IMG/VR virus record: IMGVR_UViG_3300042544_001590
Coordinates: 124,001 to 188,000 of that record
Length of the DNA: 64,000 bases
Reading direction: 5' to 3' (one strand)
Part shown: positions 4,508-37,398 of the stretch, piece after piece
Layout: the number at the start of each line of letters is the position of its first letter
Numbering within the stretch: position 1 is the first letter of the stretch
The notes under the pieces: generated by a model
What the model was told of the DNA's origin: nothing
Seen by the model: only the letters and a program-made list of their open reading frames with translations
Database searches by the model: none
Position numbers and translations under genes: made by a program

Positions 4508-5008
4508 TTATTTAGTGAAAATTATCATTTTGTTCACCACATCCTGAAAGTATTTCTCATTTAGGAATGTAAGACCTTCTTTTTCCAAATATTTGTAAAT
4601 CTTGCGAAATGATGGTGGTTTGCGATTGAGGAAAGCCATCTCCAATCCAGAGATGGTTGAGCATTCCCTAATATCGATCAGGTATTCCAGATGTTCCAAA
4701 TCATAATTGGCATCCCAAATCCTGATCTTGAAGATTCGCCGGATTTTAGCCAAAAGCTGGTTGCGGAACTTATCCTTGGTAAGAGCATTGGAAAAGAAAA
4801 TGAAATCCGTGTGGGTATTGTATTTCAGGAATTGTGTCGTGGTCTTTATGAACTCATGGGTGTAGAGTTTCTTGTTATTCCGCTTGGAGAAATCAAAGGT
4901 GGTGATCAATCCAAGGGATTCCAAAAGGATTGCGAAGTTGGTATTCGTATCCCGAAATATCTCATCAATATCGATGATCTTTCTATTTTCAAATTGAATC
5001 CTTGTCAC
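4508..5008 (-). CDS. hypothetical protein
   Basis: 166 aa ORF, 4-nt overlap with upstream gene. Confidence 0.65.
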   Translation of the reverse strand: MTRIQFENRKIIDIDEIFRDTNTNFAILLESLGLITTFDFSKRNNKKLYTHEFIKTTTQFLKYNTHTDFIFFSNALTKDKFRNQLLAKIRRIFKIRIWDANYDLEHLEYLIDIRECSTISGLEMAFLNRKPPSFRKIYKYLEKEGLTFLNEKYFQDVVNKMIIFTK

Positions 5009-5466
5009 AGTTTCAAAATAGCAGGATCACGTTCAATGTCAACAAATCCTTTTGGGATTACGCCAATGCGACAATTTAAAATGCCATTGTAAAATCTCTT
5101 GTCCAGTAAAGCATTACATTTGATCTGCCAAATTAGCTCACTGTATGTCATATGGAATTTTGAGTGACACACCTCTATCACTTCCCTTGAAAAATGCTCA
5201 ATCCCGTATTTCTCAATATCCGATAGCAATTCCTTGGACGATCCCCAATACTTCTCCACATCATTATCCACAAATGAAATGCGATTGCGTGTCTTACCTT
5301 TCAATGGTTTGCGCTTCACGCGCTTCAACAATTGCTTTTTCCCAATGTAAAAACGTCTGCTTCCTTTGTTTTGGATCACATCTGGATGATTGTTGCGGAT
5401 GAGGTAAACGAAGCCCACAACACCTTCCGTATCGGCTGGGAAATTTTTCCATGTGGTTTGCTCCAT
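5005..5466 (-). CDS. GIY-YIG (Seg-like) endonuclease family protein
   Basis: GFVYLI...FYIGKK and YWGSSKEL motifs; start at 5466 supported by TAAATA-N5-ATG. Confidence 0.75.
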   Translation of the reverse strand: MEQTTWKNFPADTEGVVGFVYLIRNNHPDVIQNKGSRRFYIGKKQLLKRVKRKPLKGKTRNRISFVDNDVEKYWGSSKELLSDIEKYGIEHFSREVIEVCHSKFHMTYSELIWQIKCNALLDKRFYNGILNCRIGVIPKGFVDIERDPAILKL

Positions 5467-5729
5467 TTTCCTATTTAGTGGCACGAATCCAGCTATAAAG
5501 CTTATCATAAGCTTTGGTGAGAAAATTAATTTGATTGATTTGTTATCTTGTAATGTTTCTATTTTTATTCTCTTAACAAGTATTAATTATAACGATTTCT
5601 AATTAATATCTGATAATAAGCTGATTGATTTCAATTAATTTTTATTTCTTTTGTTTCTTTCTTTAGTTATCTTTAATCATAGTTAATATCTAATCAAAAA
5701 CTAATAGTAAGAAAATTAATTATAAGGTA

Positions 5730-5757
5730 TTGACTTTTGAAATAGTCGAGTTAAAGT
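5730..5757 (+). promoter_or_regulatory. sigma70-like promoter TTGACT-N16-TAAAGT
   Basis: Direct motif match. Confidence 0.55.
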
Positions 5758-5832
5758 AACAGGGTGGAGGGAGGGCTATGGTCTTATGTACAAACAATAA
5801 TAAGAAAATTGAAAATAATTCATATTACACTA

Positions 5833-5859
5833 TTGACAAACTAATATGGCGAGTATAAT
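5833..5859 (+). promoter_or_regulatory. sigma70-like promoter TTGACA-N15-TATAAT
   Basis: Perfect consensus hexamers, short spacer. Confidence 0.6.
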
Positions 5860-5894
5860 TAAGGGTGGCGGGTGGGCTTGGTGTACAAACTTTA

Positions 5895-6140
5895 TTACTT
5901 CCGAACACGCTTTTTCTTCCGCTTTTTACCCGATTTCGCGCTCAGTCGCCCACTTCTCGTGCTGATTCCCAACCCATACGGATTTCTGGCATCCCCCGGA
6001 GCAAACCAATCCGTGTTTTCAATTCCAGCATGTCCAGCAATATCACCCCCGAACGCACCTCCGCTTGTCATATCCTCATTCAACATGGTTTGATAAATAT
6101 TAGCAATTTCAATCTTGTCATTGACAAAGGGATGGTTCAT
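5895..6140 (-). CDS. small protein with basic C-terminal tail
   Basis: Start MNHPFVND at 6140 (TAAATA-N5-ATG); ends KSGKKRKKKRVRK. Confidence 0.65.
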   Translation of the reverse strand: MNHPFVNDKIEIANIYQTMLNEDMTSGGAFGGDIAGHAGIENTDWFAPGDARNPYGLGISTRSGRLSAKSGKKRKKKRVRK

Positions 6141-6155
6141 GTTATTATTTAGTAA

Positions 6156-6512
6156 ATGATCCGAGTAGTGAACAAATCCAAACATAAACCAACTCCCGAT
6201 GATTTCTACATCGGGCGCGGTTCCGTCATGGGTAATCCTTATCACCACAAGGAATCCAATCATCCCCAAGCCCTGTATAAGGTGGATACGGTGGAAGAAG
6301 CGATTGAGGGATATGAATCATATTTTCAAAATTGTTACTTTTCCACAGATGAAGGATTCAGGCGACAAGTTCAAAAATTGATTGATCGGGAATCAAACGA
6401 TCAAAACACTAATCTCGTCTGTTATTGCGCTCCCGATAAATGTCATGGGGATGTTATCAAAAAATTTGTAGAGGACGCAGCAAGCCAAATTAAGTGGGGA
6501 GCTTTCATGTAA
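6156..6512 (+). CDS. DUF4326-like protein
   Basis: IGRGSVMGNPY and LVCYCAPDKCHGDV motifs. Confidence 0.8.
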   Translation: MIRVVNKSKHKPTPDDFYIGRGSVMGNPYHHKESNHPQALYKVDTVEEAIEGYESYFQNCYFSTDEGFRRQVQKLIDRESNDQNTNLVCYCAPDKCHGDVIKKFVEDAASQIKWGAFM

Positions 6513-6516
6513 AATT

Positions 6517-6915
6517 ATGAGTTTAGAATTAATTAAAAGATATCAAATACAGTTTGAAGAGTTCACCAAAATAACGGACTTCAACCTTGAGGAAATTACG
6601 AAGAGAGTTCCAGCAGAGAAGCATTTCTGGGTATGCCGTCTGATTGATGCGAAGATCGAGAAGGACAAGCTTTACAAGATCAAGGCATCCACCAAGCATA
6701 CCTTACAGAAGAAGCTGATGGAAGAGTCTCCCGTGGCTCTCAACAAGCAAGTGATGGACGATCTGGACAAGACCCCCTCGCTGGAGAACATCAACCAGAA
6801 GATCAAGGAACAAGAGTATCTGGTAGAATATCTGGATCGCGTGGTAGGATTAATCACTTTTATTTCCCAAGATATTAAAAATATTTTAAGTCTTAAACAA
6901 TTGGAGGAGCATTAA
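6517..6915 (+). CDS. uvsY: UvsY-like recombination mediator (putative)
   Basis: Helical 132 aa protein just upstream of UvsW, T4-like synteny. Confidence 0.5.
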   Translation: MSLELIKRYQIQFEEFTKITDFNLEEITKRVPAEKHFWVCRLIDAKIEKDKLYKIKASTKHTLQKKLMEESPVALNKQVMDDLDKTPSLENINQKIKEQEYLVEYLDRVVGLITFISQDIKNILSLKQLEEH

Positions 6916-6918
6916 ATT

Positions 6919-7170
6919 ATGAAAATTAAACCAAAATTTGATTATGTTACAGGGGAATTTGATACTGATATTAATAAATTAATATGCGTCAAATCCCCAA
7001 AATATGGTATTGTTGATTTATGTTTTGATAATGAGGGTGGATTTAATCTACCATTCGCAAGAATCAAATTACATTCCAGCGATAAAGCGGTGGATGCTAA
7101 AAATGTTGTAGAAGATGCGTATGCGTTAGGTGAAGAAATAGCGAGAAGATGGAATGAATTTAAAGAATGA
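6919..7170 (+). CDS. small AT-rich accessory protein
   Basis: 83 aa ORF coupled to UvsW start. Confidence 0.6.
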   Translation: MKIKPKFDYVTGEFDTDINKLICVKSPKYGIVDLCFDNEGGFNLPFARIKLHSSDKAVDAKNVVEDAYALGEEIARRWNEFKE

Positions 7171-8579
7171 TTATTTTTGACTATAAACCATCCAAACGAC
7201 AAGGACAGATCATTACCGATTCTGAAACCCTTGGTATGATTCGTAGTCATTTTTCAGTCAAGAATGACGGGGCATTTTTCGCCAAGAAGAAAGGACATAG
7301 ATTTGTCAAGGATCGAAAGTATGCCATCACTGCCACCGGATTGTTTGATTTTGGATTTCATGGGGAGATTCTGAAATATCTCAGAGACAATCAGATCACC
7401 GACATATCCCTAACGGATGCTTTCAAAAAGAGATTGAAATGTGGTGTGGGAATCGAGGAATTTTGGAATGATTTGAAATATGATGCGCGGTATTACCAGA
7501 AAGATTCAGTGATTGCTGGTCTGAAAAAAGGATTCGGGACATTTCTATTAGCCACATCTGCTGGGAAAAGTTTGGCTCAAGCCTTACTCATTGAAAATTA
7601 CACTCGAAACGTATCATTTGATACTTTCAAATGTCTCATAGTAGTCCCCGGTTTGTCTCTTGTGAACCAATTACAGGGGGATTTTGAGGATTATGGCGTG
7701 ACATTCACGTATTCAGGATGGACGGGGGGAACAGAACCTCAAGATACTCAAGTTGTGATATGCAATTCTGAGAACCTTCTTTCTCAATTTACCAACAATC
7801 CGTGGATTTTGAGCGTGAATCTGCTCATAACAGATGAGTGTCACAAGGTAGCAAGCGAGAATCAGATTTCCAAAATCATAAACAAAATCCACACACCCAA
7901 CAAATTCGGATTCACGGGAACGCTTTCCGATAAACCCATCGACCAATGGAAAACAATCGGGACATTTGGCTCCGTTATATATGAGAAGAAATCCAAGGAA
8001 CTTAGGGATGAGGGTTATATTTCCGATGTGGAAATCACAGCCCTGCAACTCAATCATCCCAAAACGATAAAATTTAAATATAAAGATGAACTGGAATATC
8101 TATACAAACACGAAAAAAGAAATCAGATCATCGCTAAATTGGCTGATTCAATCAGTGGTAATGTCCTTATCATGGTTAATCATCTTGATCACGGAGATAG
8201 TCTATTATCTCTTATGTCTTCCCGATCTGATAAAAGAGTGTTCTTTGTTAAAGGGGAAATGGAAGTGGAAAAAAGGAAAGAAATAATTGACATGATGGAA
8301 AAGAATGATAACATCATTTGTATTGCCATGGCATCCATCTTTTCAACTGGTATCAATATCAAGAATCTCCCCAATATCATATTTGCGGGACTTGGGAAGT
8401 CATTCATTCGGGTTGTACAATCCATTGGTCGGGGACTCCGGTTGCATGATAACAAATCCAAGCTACGCATCATTGATGTTTCGGATAATTTGAAGTATTC
8501 CATGTCCCATGCGTTACACAGGCAGGAAATATACGATCAAGAGCAAATTTTATGGAAAATTAAGGAGGTGTCGCTGTGA
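7167..8579 (+). CDS. uvsW: SF2 DNA helicase UvsW
   Basis: LATSAGKS Walker A, DECH box, QSIGRGLR motif VI; T4-like synteny. Confidence 0.92.
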   Translation: MIIFDYKPSKRQGQIITDSETLGMIRSHFSVKNDGAFFAKKKGHRFVKDRKYAITATGLFDFGFHGEILKYLRDNQITDISLTDAFKKRLKCGVGIEEFWNDLKYDARYYQKDSVIAGLKKGFGTFLLATSAGKSLAQALLIENYTRNVSFDTFKCLIVVPGLSLVNQLQGDFEDYGVTFTYSGWTGGTEPQDTQVVICNSENLLSQFTNNPWILSVNLLITDECHKVASENQISKIINKIHTPNKFGFTGTLSDKPIDQWKTIGTFGSVIYEKKSKELRDEGYISDVEITALQLNHPKTIKFKYKDELEYLYKHEKRNQIIAKLADSISGNVLIMVNHLDHGDSLLSLMSSRSDKRVFFVKGEMEVEKRKEIIDMMEKNDNIICIAMASIFSTGINIKNLPNIIFAGLGKSFIRVVQSIGRGLRLHDNKSKLRIIDVSDNLKYSMSHALHRQEIYDQEQILWKIKEVSL

Positions 8580-36048: not shown

Positions 36049-36439
36049 TATTTTTCTGGACGACATTCGGTTTCCCAAGGATGCTTTTCTCCAAAAAGAA
36101 TTGGCATATCTCACGGAATATTCTAAAATTCCTGAAAACGAATGGGTGATCGTGAGGAATTATGAGGATTTTGTGAAAACGATTGAAGAACGCGGTATTC
36201 CAGCGGCAGCGAGTTTTGATTGTGATTTAAATTCTGAACATTTTAGACATTATGTTAAGGATAGTATTAATTCCGGTATTTATGAATGGGAAAATTTCAA
36301 ATCTAAATGTGGAATTCATTGTGCTTTATATTTGAAATCTTTATTGTGTGATGGAGATGACACAAAAGTTTTTATACATAGTGCTAATATTATTGGTAGT
36401 ATGATTATTAGAGAAATGATGAGGGCATATTTATTTTAA
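36038..36439 (+). CDS. cyclic-phosphate-processing receiver-domain-like protein
   Basis: IFLDDIR.P, WVIVRNYEDF, SFDCDL, IHSAN..G motifs. Confidence 0.75.
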   Translation: MKYNIFLDDIRFPKDAFLQKELAYLTEYSKIPENEWVIVRNYEDFVKTIEERGIPAAASFDCDLNSEHFRHYVKDSINSGIYEWENFKSKCGIHCALYLKSLLCDGDDTKVFIHSANIIGSMIIREMMRAYLF

Positions 36440-37398
36440 ATATTTTTATTTTTTGGGATTAAAATCCATCCTTTATGTATTCCTGTTTTTGATGGTTTGT
36501 TTTCTTTTCCAGCTTTTGCTAAAAAATTAAAATCCAAATTTTTTTCTCTACAAAATTCCGCGACATTATGTATTAAATATTCCTCTCCAGTGTAAATATT
36601 TTTAATAATTCTTTTAGTTTCTTGAAAAGAATCAATATTTTTTATAAATTTTTCATATTTTCTATCTAATCTAATAGATTTTGTAGAATCTTTATAAATC
36701 CATTCCAAAAATTTGAATGCATCTTTTTGAATTGATATACTACAAAGGTTTACATATTTAGTATAATATATTTCTTGAGTTGTTATCTCTATGGTTTTTA
36801 GATAATCTTTAATAAAAATTAGACATTCTGAAGTGCTTAGAAGATTTATTCTGTATCTGTTATTGATAATAGTAACATTACCATCTCCATCAAATATACC
36901 CCTAACGAAGTGTGAATAATATTTTTCTTCGATAATTGGAAATTTAAAAGATTTTGATTTATTTTCATCAACACCGTGATTTTTTATATATTGGCAAAAT
37001 TCTTTAGAATTGACTTGTAAAAATTCTATATCATAGGTTTTTCCTGTACGTTTGTCATATCTATTGATACTTGAAATTGGACTTCCAGAATCTATAGCCT
37101 TTTTAAATTTTGGTAAAACATCTTTATCCTTTACACCAATAGTTAATTTATAGCCAGATTTTTGAATACATCCATCTGCAACAATAAAACCCAACCAGTA
37201 AGCTTTTTCGGCAGAATCAATTTTTTCGAAATATTTTATATCTAATGATCTTTTTCTCATAGGTGTTGGAATTCCATTAGAATCTAATATTTTTTTGATA
37301 TGTCTAACTGTTATGTTTAAATTCTTAGAAACCTTACTCAAACTTTGGAGCTTGAGGTATTCATCTATAACTGTTTGATGTTTTATAAATTCTTTCAT
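36436..37398 (-). CDS. free-standing LAGLIDADG homing endonuclease with N-terminal HTH
   Basis: AYWLGFIVADG and FVRGIFDGDG; very AT-rich; inverted relative to neighbours. Confidence 0.85.
   Translation of the reverse strand: MKEFIKHQTVIDEYLKLQSLSKVSKNLNITVRHIKKILDSNGIPTPMRKRSLDIKYFEKIDSAEKAYWLGFIVADGCIQKSGYKLTIGVKDKDVLPKFKKAIDSGSPISSINRYDKRTGKTYDIEFLQVNSKEFCQYIKNHGVDENKSKSFKFPIIEEKYYSHFVRGIFDGDGNVTIINNRYRINLLSTSECLIFIKDYLKTIEITTQEIYYTKYVNLCSISIQKDAFKFLEWIYKDSTKSIRLDRKYEKFIKNIDSFQETKRIIKNIYTGEEYLIHNVAEFCREKNLDFNFLAKAGKENKPSKTGIHKGWILIPKNKNI

Follow-up and report, generated by a model that had tools for sequence, protein, structure and literature searches.

Among replication origins that fire from a promoter, those of bacteriophage T4 offer the closest comparison to the element analysed here. 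T4 oriF, also called ori(uvsY), is about 100 bp of promoter plus AT-rich unwinding element and works through a persistent R-loop, and oriE, oriF and oriG lie at switches of transcription and nucleotide skew (PMC3016281). T4 R-loop origins use MotA-dependent middle promoters and need neither a G-rich sequence nor any particular downstream sequence. The origin of the lactococcal Ceduovirus c2 is a non-coding region between divergent early and late blocks, bounded by two early promoters, PE1 and PE2, the first of which makes the non-coding transcript PE1-T; no ORF or ribosome-binding site follows it and initiation is transcription-mediated (PMC7150918). In c2 the length and structure of the transcript matter. 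[quoted passage not shown] A structural parallel is provided by the (3+1) interlocked dimeric quadruplexes, synthetic DNA oligonucleotides such as 93del and s2, d(GGGGTGGTGGGTGGGT), in which one long, one two-G and two three-G tracts are joined by single-nucleotide loops; NMR showed this class to be extremely stable, with the short tract important for a defined fold (PMC3575790). The T7 primary origin combines the tandem promoters phi1.1A and phi1.1B, which are served by the phage's own polymerase, with an AT-rich region, and ColE1 RNA II contains a G-rich segment that keeps the primer hybridised, but needs a long folded RNA and RNase H processing far from the promoter.

We examined a locus in a 64,000-nt stretch (hereafter the window) of the 207,489-bp genome of a lake phage, in which two tandem copies of a near-perfect bacterial-type promoter point straight into a four-run guanine tract beside the most AT-rich DNA of the genome. 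Positions are those of the window, and the features of the locus are as follows.

5005-5508, minus strand: gene for a SegE-like GIY-YIG protein (PF19835, E=3e-19), the left border of the control region.
5509-5727, no strand: AT-rich tract, of which 5525-5724 (17% GC) is the most AT-rich 200 bp of the genome.
5517-5531, plus strand: repeated box GT(G/A)AGAAAATTAATT, copy 1; copy 2 is 5707-5721 and a third, looser copy is 5800-5814.
5730-5757, plus strand: module 1 promoter, TTGACT (5730-5735), 16 nt, TAAAGT (5752-5757).
5762-5775, plus strand: module 1 G-tract GGGTGGAGGGAGGG (runs 3-2-3-3, 1-nt loops), on the non-template strand at the expected start site.
5776-5830, plus strand: AT-rich spacer between the modules (about 22% GC), holding TGTACAAAC (5787-5795) and the third box, a candidate unwinding element for module 1.
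5833-5860, plus strand: module 2 promoter, TTGACA (5833-5838), then TATAAT (5854-5859) after 15 nt, or ATAATT after 16 nt, preceded by TG.
5863-5876, plus strand: module 2 G-tract GGGTGGCGGGTGGG, followed by TGTACAAAC (5882-5890).
5895-6143, minus strand: small conserved protein gene (82 aa, basic C-terminal tail), convergent with the modules.
6121-6148, plus strand: separate strong promoter-like site (TTGACA, 16 nt, TATTAT, with TG) for the DUF4326/UvsY-like/UvsW-like operon.
6156-8579, plus strand: DUF4326 (6156-6512), UvsY-like (6517-6915), an 83-aa ORF and the UvsW-like helicase (7167-8579), the head of the replication/recombination gene block.

The original prediction had described an AT-rich tract of about 200 bp with repeats, followed by two aligned modules of promoter, G-tract and a shared downstream motif, and all of these sequence statements were confirmed. 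The repeated GAAAATTAATT lies at 5521 and 5711, inside the 15-nt repeats 5517-5531 and 5707-5721, and GATTGATTT lies at 5533 and 5623. Both modules open with TATTGAC (5728-5734 and 5831-5837), N12 and CGAGT. The 15-nt spacer of module 2 meant that a consensus promoter scan did not list it, and promoter-like hexamer pairs as such were no more frequent here than in shuffled sequence (10 against 10.8), so that the significance of the element comes from its conservation and not from the scan. The 14-nt pattern GGGNGGNGGGNGGG, however, occurs only at these two places in the genome, against a chance expectation that we estimate at about 0.01, and a profile of the whole module finds only these two copies (E=5e-16 and 1e-11). 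The claim that this is the longest non-coding stretch in the window holds if ORFs of 50 aa or more on either strand are counted (5509-5864, 356 nt). The statement that no plus-strand ORF follows the promoters needs qualification, as short plus-strand ORFs do exist (26 aa from 5778; 39, 73 and 95 aa from 5846, 5872 and 5865), but none is conserved. The next gene is indeed convergent; the real gene is the 82-aa minus-strand ORF rather than a 124-aa one, as mismatches across 22 distinct relatives fall 114/135/526 on codon positions 1/2/3 of the minus frame.

We therefore rejected a protein-coding reading of the modules. The 26-aa ORF has a GGAGG 7 nt upstream, but neither start codon nor frame is conserved in it or in the ORFs from 5846, 5865 and 5872, TGTACAAAC sits in different frames in the two modules, and the coding signal belongs to the overlapping minus-strand ORF. 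No Rfam 15 family and no tRNA or tmRNA matched at the gathering score anywhere in the window, and the RNA 5761-5900 folds worse than shuffled sequence (z=+1.55); no base-paired RNA fold is conserved.

Comparison with other phages gives the predicted anatomy much more weight than the single sequence could, and shows that the element is functional DNA and not chance. Each module is a sigma-70-type promoter followed 2-4 nt later by GGGNGGNGGGNGGG, and the unit is kept in about 44 related T4-like phage contigs. All related loci that reach the region carry it, in one or two copies, although one distant relative (locus L038; L-numbers denote loci and G-numbers genomes) keeps only a looser, more divergent G-rich version. 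The -35 and -10 columns are conserved in 25 aligned modules, the guanines are nearly invariant and the three 1-nt loops vary freely. The right half of the AT-rich tract (~5600-5725) is better conserved than the neighbouring genes, keeping 86-89% nt identity over 126-150 nt in relatives whose uvsY, uvsW and upstream gene are 71-73% identical; for module and AT tract together the range in relatives with 71-73% nt identity in uvsY and uvsW is 81-89%. Relatives with only 29-50% UvsY aa identity keep an almost identical core, and a near-identical TATAATTAAG-GGGTGGTGGGCGGG-CTAGGT occurs in relatives with under 50% UvsY identity, while a related AATAAGAAATT box follows the unit in distant relatives. 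The SegE-like gene is likewise part of the conserved setting: homologues with 45-94% aa identity flank the element in nearly all relatives, which rules out the idea that a homing-endonuclease insertion created the region.

The unit occurs at only one locus in every complete genome checked: in the phage's own genome, in the complete relatives G001 and G002, and in the unrelated complete genomes G006, G007, G009 and G010; an extra hit in genome G005 lies inside a coding gene. This single locus also sets it apart from the promoter-early stem-loop (PeSL) cassettes of T4-type phages, which exist as many dispersed copies per genome flanking variable genes. It could still be argued that the unit is the end of a small mobile element (an inverted-repeat or MITE-like cassette, or a PeSL-like recombination cassette) that spread between phages and carries a promoter by accident, since it occurs in unrelated lineages, sometimes as inverted pairs, with variable copy number and orientation and plastic neighbouring gene content. 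We regard this as very unlikely. Between lineages only the functional positions are kept (-35, -10, the guanines and the short downstream motif) while spacers and loops differ completely, the opposite of recent transposition; no relative that reaches the region lacks the unit, and no bona fide copy was found in 185,579 bacterial and archaeal genomes. The single hit in that scan lay in a candidate-phylum genome, inside a coding sequence that we read as ComEC-like from its translation alone, and gives no clue to the host. A partial scan of metagenome contigs for the G-tract plus CTNGGT was swamped by chance hits and returned no family member. Cultured phages gave no DNA match, and a literature search for the exact 14-mers found only aptamer, quadruplex and human papers, with no paper on such a phage element.

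The G-tract is not a canonical quadruplex motif of four runs of three or more guanines with loops of 1-7 nt: the second run has two Gs in 35 of 43 distinct variants, including both window copies, and ViennaRNA predicts only a two-layer quadruplex of -9.7 kcal/mol, against -36 for four GGG runs. At least seven variants from relatives read GGGGTGGYGGGCGGG, which is 4-2-3-3 like s2, whereas the window's own tracts are 3-2-3-3 with no four-G leg; any (3+1)-type fold of the phage sequences would be inferred by analogy with synthetic oligonucleotides. CSB II, by comparison, is a G6AG8-type run that serves a different polymerase in different organisms. Both window tracts satisfy the Roy and Lieber definition of an initiation zone, which starts and ends with clusters of three or more Gs near the 5′ end of the transcript, and lie at the expected start site. 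They are not followed by the elongation zone of 100 nt or more with at least 40% G, as its place is taken by AT-rich DNA. A Chi-like site, a RegB (GGAG) target and a CsrA (GGA) sponge were considered and dropped, because these sub-motifs are absent from many variants.

The unit keeps its place near uvsY, but is single, tandem or inverted in different relatives and appears independent of any particular downstream gene. In the window two tandem units face a convergent gene. Some relatives have a DNA methyltransferase gene inserted after the unit; L062 has the unit inverted, with a hairpin plus U-run 74 nt downstream, before the next gene; L085 has two units on the other side of the small gene; and L055, L060, L077 and G001 have terminator-like hairpins 100-340 nt downstream. 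The possibility that the modules are the methyltransferase promoter left orphaned in the window was rejected as the sole role, as lineages without that gene, including the most distant, keep the unit intact, and the gene has its own promoter-like site 5-6 nt before its ATG. It is also very unlikely that the modules make an early antisense RNA silencing the convergent small late gene until late in infection. They are convergent with that gene in the window and most relatives, and no terminator was found between module 2 and the gene in the window. However, the unit points away from the small gene in L062 and in the sense direction in L085, hairpin terminators sit at the gene's 3′ end in the L055 group and G001, the methyltransferase gene separates the two in many relatives, and unrelated phages with no such gene also have the unit.

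A further reading, which we consider unlikely, is that the unit is simply a special, very strong early promoter for whichever operon lies downstream: the uvsY/uvsW block by read-through in the window, the methyltransferase gene, the SegE-like block or the small gene in relatives, and both divergent blocks where units form face-to-face pairs. The G-tract would then be a regulatory or stabilising leader, acting as a switch for promoter escape or pausing, as protection of the 5′ end or as a Shine-Dalgarno-like ribosome-binding stabiliser; polypurine 5′ stabilisers occur in Bacillus phage early RNAs. A co-oriented gene exists at some distance downstream in every arrangement, no terminator separates the units from the small gene in L085, and the face-to-face pairs lie exactly between divergent gene blocks. 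On the other hand, the next genes have good promoters of their own right in front of them (6121-6148 in the window, so that the DUF4326/UvsY-like/UvsW-like genes do not need the modules, with an equivalent TTGACA-16-TATCAT in L032; the methyltransferase gene; and loci L252, L257 and L266), terminators intervene in L062, L055, L060, L077 and G001, and the window transcript would have to cross a real gene antisense for 250 nt. A general leader device should, moreover, recur at many early promoters rather than at one locus per genome.

The position of the unit is suggestive of an origin. The 60 nt after the G-tract have a median GC of 18% across 49 distinct units, and G001 has 19-nt and 9-nt AT-only tandem repeats right after the unit. 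In the window itself the arrangement is less regular: the long AT tract lies upstream of the modules, and while module 1 is followed by about 55 nt of AT-rich DNA, module 2 is followed at once by the GC-richer end of a gene (38% GC). Cumulative GC and AT skew have a local minimum at the element in the phage's own genome, and the global GC-skew minimum is 0.6 kb from the unit in G001 and 1 kb from it in G009, but this minimum coincides with the switch in coding strand, which alone can produce it. The unit lies in the divergent strand switch of G006, G007 and G009 and one small gene away from it in G000 and G001, whereas in G010 it is not at a strand switch; for G006 and G007, crude typing of gaps with ORFs of 75 aa or more had mislabelled the gaps because of ORFs that we judged spurious from their composition. 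In unrelated, non-T4-like phages, the unit often forms face-to-face pairs around 100-300 nt of extremely AT-rich DNA (L221, L256 and L265), and paired DnaA boxes and iteron-like repeats lie beside the unit in L266, L238, L233 and L236, the paired boxes only in L266 and L238. In the window region no DnaA box (TTATCCACA or its complement) was seen on reading the sequence, the scripted box scan having covered only the other loci.

Taken with the position next to the UvsY-like gene, where T4 has oriF, these observations lead us to propose, tentatively but as the best reading, that the region is a cis-acting replication origin of the transcription-primed kind, analogous to T4 oriF and the c2 origin. 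In this view, host RNA polymerase would bind one of the two tandem, near-consensus sigma-70 promoters and start inside the run of G clusters on the non-template strand. The G-rich start of the RNA would stay hybridised to the C-rich template as an R-loop, while the displaced G-tract, alone or together with the RNA, would fold into a non-canonical quadruplex holding the loop open; the adjoining very AT-rich DNA would then melt, the RNA 3′ end would prime leading-strand synthesis, and the phage helicase and primase would load on the displaced strand. What our analysis establishes is the anatomy, its conservation beyond that of the neighbouring genes, the absence of a coding or base-paired RNA signal, the single locus per genome, the freedom of orientation and copy number, and the association with AT-rich DNA, strand switches, skew minima, DnaA boxes and iterons, whereas transcription, the R-loop, the quadruplex, priming and initiation of replication are inferred from sequence. 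No public RNA run was listed for the region, and two metatranscriptomes of a lake study showed only 31-nt low-complexity matches to it. The interpretation offered in the original prediction, a duplicated R-loop/G-quadruplex-priming origin or short G-rich non-coding RNAs, is therefore only partly supported, although its remark that T4 origins are primed by promoter-driven R-loops removed by UvsW agrees with the T4 review (PMC3016281).

The second of these alternatives is not excluded, although we think it unlikely: the unit could be the gene for an abundant short non-coding RNA whose only conserved part is the G-rich 5′ end (G-tract plus WATAGAT or CTWGGT), acting as a quadruplex or purine-rich aptamer or decoy for a host or phage protein, or for the ribosome's anti-Shine-Dalgarno sequence, with tandem copies raising the dose. 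A perfect promoter with a conserved leader could equally serve expression of an RNA. The near-perfect promoter with its T-rich upstream element, the terminator-like hairpins 74-340 nt downstream in several relatives, the single locus, the lack of an ORF and the occurrence in unrelated phages, which could share a host target, are all compatible with this. However, the transcript body is neither conserved in sequence or length (100 to about 345 nt) nor folded, and no terminator was found in the window or its close relatives. With 2-4 nt between the -10 and the tract, standard sigma-70 geometry places the usual start point inside the tract, so the RNA would lack part of the first G run and an RNA-only four-run quadruplex is unlikely. 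Nor does this idea explain the constant AT-rich neighbourhood, the DnaA boxes and iterons, or the strand-switch position.

Compared with T4 oriF and oriG, the locus shares, at the sequence level, promoter-like sites followed by AT-rich DNA within about 100 bp, a proposed non-coding function of the transcript, a position next to uvsY/uvsW at a switch of transcription strand and skew, and a phage-encoded UvsW-like helicase. It differs in that the -35 (TTGACA or TTGACT) is the host consensus and not a MotA box, in the strictly conserved G-cluster tract after the -10, in the lack of sequence similarity, and in a conservation that extends over far greater phage distances than T4 origins are known to show. 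The resemblance to c2 is one of architecture only: modules 1 and 2, and the arrangements in G006, G007 and G009, recall its two tandem early promoters bounding a stretch with no ORF or ribosome-binding site at the divergence of gene blocks, but there is no sequence relation, no G-tract is described for c2, and here the transcript body is variable and unstructured. With T7 the locus has in common tandem promoters next to AT-rich DNA, and with ColE1 a G-rich RNA segment, here presumed, that would keep the primer hybridised.

Origins of T4-like and most environmental phages are unknown, and this roughly 60-nt unit has a conservation pattern that isolates the parts that matter: the promoter hexamers, eleven guanines, single-nucleotide loops of free identity, and AT-rich DNA next to it. 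If it is an origin, it gives a sequence signature for finding origins in uncultured phage genomes, a bacterial-virus counterpart of the mitochondrial CSB II and herpesvirus oriLyt G-rich R-loop mechanisms, and a compact test object for co-transcriptional quadruplex and R-loop formation by bacterial RNA polymerase. If it is instead an RNA gene or a promoter device, it is still one of the most conserved non-coding elements in these genomes and has not been described. A more speculative possibility, which we hold to be unlikely but compatible with the evidence, is that a portable cassette of consensus promoter, short-second-tract G-quadruplex and AT-rich core forms a widespread, previously unrecognised class of phage origin, used once per genome by unrelated lineages as single, tandem or face-to-face units. 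The deliberately incomplete quadruplex (3-2-3-3 or 4-2-3-3) would be completed by the nascent RNA, by a second unit or by a free guanine nucleotide, coupling origin firing to transcription and perhaps to the guanine-nucleotide pool.

As for the proteins encoded around the element, the 82-aa product of the small convergent gene had no Pfam, PHROG or cultured-phage match. Domain searches of the genome for gp59, MotA and T4-type RNase H, which had no positive control, found nothing; for gp59 and RNase H this counts against the origin reading. Downstream of the UvsW-like gene, the replication/recombination block continues with SbcCD-like proteins, DNA polymerase, UvsX and a DnaB-like helicase.

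The 207,489-bp IMG/VR virus record, of which bases 124,001-188,000 were analysed, has a GC content of 39% and carries a 95-bp end repeat, which in our view suggests a circular or circularly permuted genome. The sequence is found in lake-water metagenomes. Around the element under study, the genes and the gap between them are arranged as follows:

5005-5508, minus strand: gene for a SegE-like GIY-YIG protein, with which a block of minus-strand genes ends
5509-5894: the 386-nt gap
5895-6143, minus strand: a small gene
6156-6512, plus strand: DUF4326
6517-6915, plus strand: UvsY-like protein, followed on the same strand by an 83-aa ORF
7167-8579, plus strand: UvsW-like helicase

Further downstream are SbcD/SbcC-like proteins, DNA polymerase, UvsX and a DnaB-like helicase, and a complete relative has the T4 major capsid protein. 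The phage is therefore a distant T4-like phage, its best UvsW match to any cultured phage being about 32%, and the element sits at the head of its replication/recombination gene block. The SegE-like gene is a conserved resident of this locus in nearly all relatives rather than a mobile insertion; some of its cultured-phage homologues are annotated as "NAD synthetase", which looks like a propagated misannotation.

The original prediction of two tandem promoter plus G-tract modules beside an AT-rich tract was correct as an observation, and every motif is where it had been placed. The stretch 5525-5724 (17% GC) is the most AT-rich 200 bp of the whole genome, and the gap is the longest stretch of the window free of any ORF of 50 aa or more. 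The second most AT-rich 200 bp of the genome (18% GC, around window 36,593) lies inside a 320-aa minus-strand ORF (36436-37398) in a kilobase of 27% GC, which may be a recently acquired gene. Module 1 consists of TTGACT, 16 nt, TAAAGT, then 4 nt, then GGGTGGAGGGAGGG. Module 2, starting 101 nt after module 1, consists of TTGACA, 15 nt, TATAAT (or 16 nt to ATAATT with TG upstream), then 2-3 nt, then GGGTGGCGGGTGGG. The 14-nt G pattern occurs nowhere else in the genome, and a profile of the module finds only these two copies.

Two corrections were nonetheless needed. The convergent gene is real but shorter than the mechanically called ORF: it encodes 82 aa, is conserved down to about 50% identity, and its substitutions concentrate on the third codon position of the minus frame (114/135/526 on positions 1/2/3). 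Further to that, the uvsY operon has its own strong promoter at 6121-6148. The small protein, about 80-100 aa across the family, lies between the element and uvsY in the whole family and has a core like NEDMTSGG..GGD..G(I/L)EN.D.(F/Y)A.GD.RNPYGLG and a Lys/Arg-rich tail; its C-terminal part varies greatly in length (up to about 245 aa in the relative L014), and no Pfam, PHROG or cultured-phage match to it was found.

Forty-three loci encoding a relative of the UvsY-like protein were compared. Every locus that extends far enough carries the promoter plus G-tract, once or twice, always with the G-tract on the non-template strand 2-4 nt after the -10, although one distant relative (L038) keeps only a looser, more divergent G-rich version. 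The guanines are almost invariant, while the three single-nucleotide loops take A, T or C, and the middle one also G. Relatives whose uvsY, uvsW and upstream genes are only 71-73% identical at the DNA level keep 86-89% identity over 126-150 nt of the AT-rich tract and 81-87% identity in module 2, and the non-coding DNA is thus under stronger constraint than the genes. A collection-wide pattern scan found 52 stretches, of which 44 are in this phage family and in the same neighbourhood. They include phages with only 29-50% UvsY identity that still read TATAATTAAG-GGGTGGTGGGCGGG-CTAGGT.

The element is not a gene of a known kind. No start codon or reading frame is conserved after the tract, searches of the window returned no Rfam family or tRNA, and the presumed transcript 5761-5900 folds less well than its shuffles (z=+1.55). 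Only the first ~25 nt after the -10 are conserved, namely the G-tract plus WATAGAT or CTWGGT, with a looser TGTACAAT / AATAAGAAATT block at a variable distance downstream. An abundant RNA whose G-rich 5' end would be the active part is considered an unlikely, though still the leading, alternative to the origin reading discussed below.

The unit is also independent of its neighbours. Some relatives carry an N6/N4 DNA methyltransferase gene right after the unit, between it and the small gene (L029:2766-3692, L015:2801-3733, L014:1892-2839 and L017:2446-3375), while it is absent from others. That gene has its own promoter-like site, TTGACA-16-TACTGT (or TTGATT-16-TAATGT), only 5-6 nt before its ATG, suggesting a leaderless mRNA. 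DUF4326 is present in the window and some relatives, and absent in others (for example, loci L003-L013), where the small gene abuts uvsY. In the relatives L062/L063 the unit is inverted and lies just after the small gene, pointing at the SegE-like gene, and a good hairpin plus U-run follows 74 nt later, before that gene. In L085 two tandem units lie between the small gene and uvsY. In L055, L060, L077 and the complete genome G001, a hairpin plus T-run sits at the 3' end of the small gene, 100-340 nt after the unit. In G001 the space between is filled, directly after the unit, by three 19-nt and about nine 9-nt tandem repeats (GTAATTATA), all AT-only (positions 1557-1680 of locus L097, G001:38500-42500), which expand the gap to about 450 nt. 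So in several lineages the transcript can only be a short, variable, non-coding, AT-rich RNA, and neither antisense control of the small gene, which we regard as very unlikely, nor service as the uvsY promoter can be the general function. A special early promoter with a regulatory or stabilising leader also appears unlikely. The G pattern occurs only at this locus in the phage's own genome and in the complete relatives G001 (211.7 kb) and G002 (206.6 kb), the one extra hit, in genome G005, being inside a coding sequence.

The unit is not confined to this family. A relaxed scan (TATAAT, 2-6 nt, G pattern) found the same unit in contigs with no detectable homologues of the flanking proteins (UvsY-, UvsW-, SegE-like and the small protein), where it has a T-rich upstream stretch, TTGACA, 17 nt, TATAAT, 2-4 nt, GGGTGGNGGGNGGG and then WATAGAT. 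Four of these are complete or near-complete genomes of 73-157 kb with no T4-type capsid gene, and the motif is again at a single locus in each. Their neighbouring genes are unrelated to one another (terminase, dUTPase/NrdD, integrase, PhoH, methyltransferase); one such unrelated phage, L221, has a methyltransferase of the same PHROG as the relatives above about 1.1 kb from its unit.

In L221 (genome G006; 4700-5150 of the locus), L256 (genome G007) and L265, all from other phage lineages, the units form face-to-face pairs around 100-300 nt of extremely AT-rich, ORF-free DNA. A read-through RNA would carry the G-tract at its 5' end and a register-matched C-tract downstream (12 of 14 pairs in G007 by hand alignment), so it could close a large loop. 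In the GC-richer L266 and L238 a pair of DnaA boxes (TGTGGATAA, 2 nt, TGTGGAWAA) lies within 100 nt of the unit, and a hairpin terminator lies just upstream of it. L266, L233 and L236 have iteron-like direct repeats next to the unit, those following it in L266 and L233 being about 30 nt long. Between lineages only the promoter hexamers, the guanines and the short downstream motif are shared, while spacers and loops differ, which argues for common function rather than recent transfer; a mobile cassette is accordingly rated very unlikely. No bona fide copy was found in the bacterial and archaeal genome collection or in cultured phages.

In the phage's own genome, cumulative GC and AT skews have a local minimum at about 130 kb, which is the element. 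The global GC-skew minimum is 0.6 kb from the unit in G001 and 1 kb away in G009, one of the genomes outside the family. In G006, G007 and G009 the unit lies in the divergent gap between a leftward and a rightward gene block; in G006 that is the only major (-|+) switch of large-gene blocks in the genome, and in G009 the gap is the longest in the genome. In genomes G000 and G001 the unit is one small gene away from the switch, whereas G010 is an exception. Skew and coding strand are confounded, so this evidence is supportive only. Across 49 distinct units, the 60 nt after the tract have a median GC of 18%.

The run pattern of the G-tract is 3-2-3-3 in 28 variants, 4-2-3-3 in at least 7, and 3-6-3 or 4-6-3 in 8, with loops that are always 1 nt. 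This is not the canonical quadruplex motif, and ViennaRNA gives a two-layer quadruplex of -9.7 kcal/mol. However, the synthetic DNA d(GGGGTGGTGGGTGGGT) has the same 4-2-3-3 pattern with single-nucleotide linkers and by NMR forms a very stable (3+1) interlocked dimeric quadruplex, the short tract being needed for a defined fold (PMC3575790); for the phage sequence this is a lead only. Free loop letters together with fixed guanines fit a structural constraint better than base pairing or sequence-specific protein recognition. As only 2-4 nt separate the -10 from the tract, the usual start point is inferred from standard promoter geometry to lie inside the first half of the tract.

The best-supported reading is a transcription-primed origin. 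In this view, a very strong host-type promoter would start in a G-cluster R-loop initiation zone (as defined in PMC3258121), the rG:dC hybrid would persist, helped by a quadruplex on the displaced strand, the neighbouring AT-rich DNA would open, and the RNA would prime DNA synthesis. This is how T4 oriF, also called ori(uvsY), works apart from the G-tract; T4 oriE, oriF and oriG also lie at strand and skew switches, and oriE uses an early promoter (PMC3016281). The lactococcal c2 origin has the same architecture, a non-coding stretch between divergent blocks bounded by two early promoters, the first of which makes a non-coding RNA (PMC7150918). The original interpretation, an R-loop/G-quadruplex-primed origin or short G-rich ncRNAs, is thus partly supported. 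We hold the origin reading only tentatively, since what the comparison of sequences establishes is the layout of the unit, its conservation and its placement, whereas transcription, the hybrid, the quadruplex and initiation of replication are all inferred. No RNA run covering the region was found, a scan of metagenomes was uninformative, and searches for gp59, MotA and T4 RNase H domains were negative, albeit without a positive control.

Two other strongly G-rich stretches of the phage's own genome, at 67,532-67,600 and 206,228-206,260 (G10, and GGTGGGGGTGGGATGGGGGG; GGGGGGTATGGTAAAGGGTGG) and outside the window, lie immediately upstream of genes that both begin ATGGCTAAAAT, but they have no consensus promoter in front and do not match the module profile. 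In the unrelated viral contigs L219, L223, L250, L254 and L264, TTATAAT is followed after 2-4 nt by uninterrupted runs of 18 or more G, upstream of a conserved sequence, which could be a phase-variable tract or a sequencing artefact.
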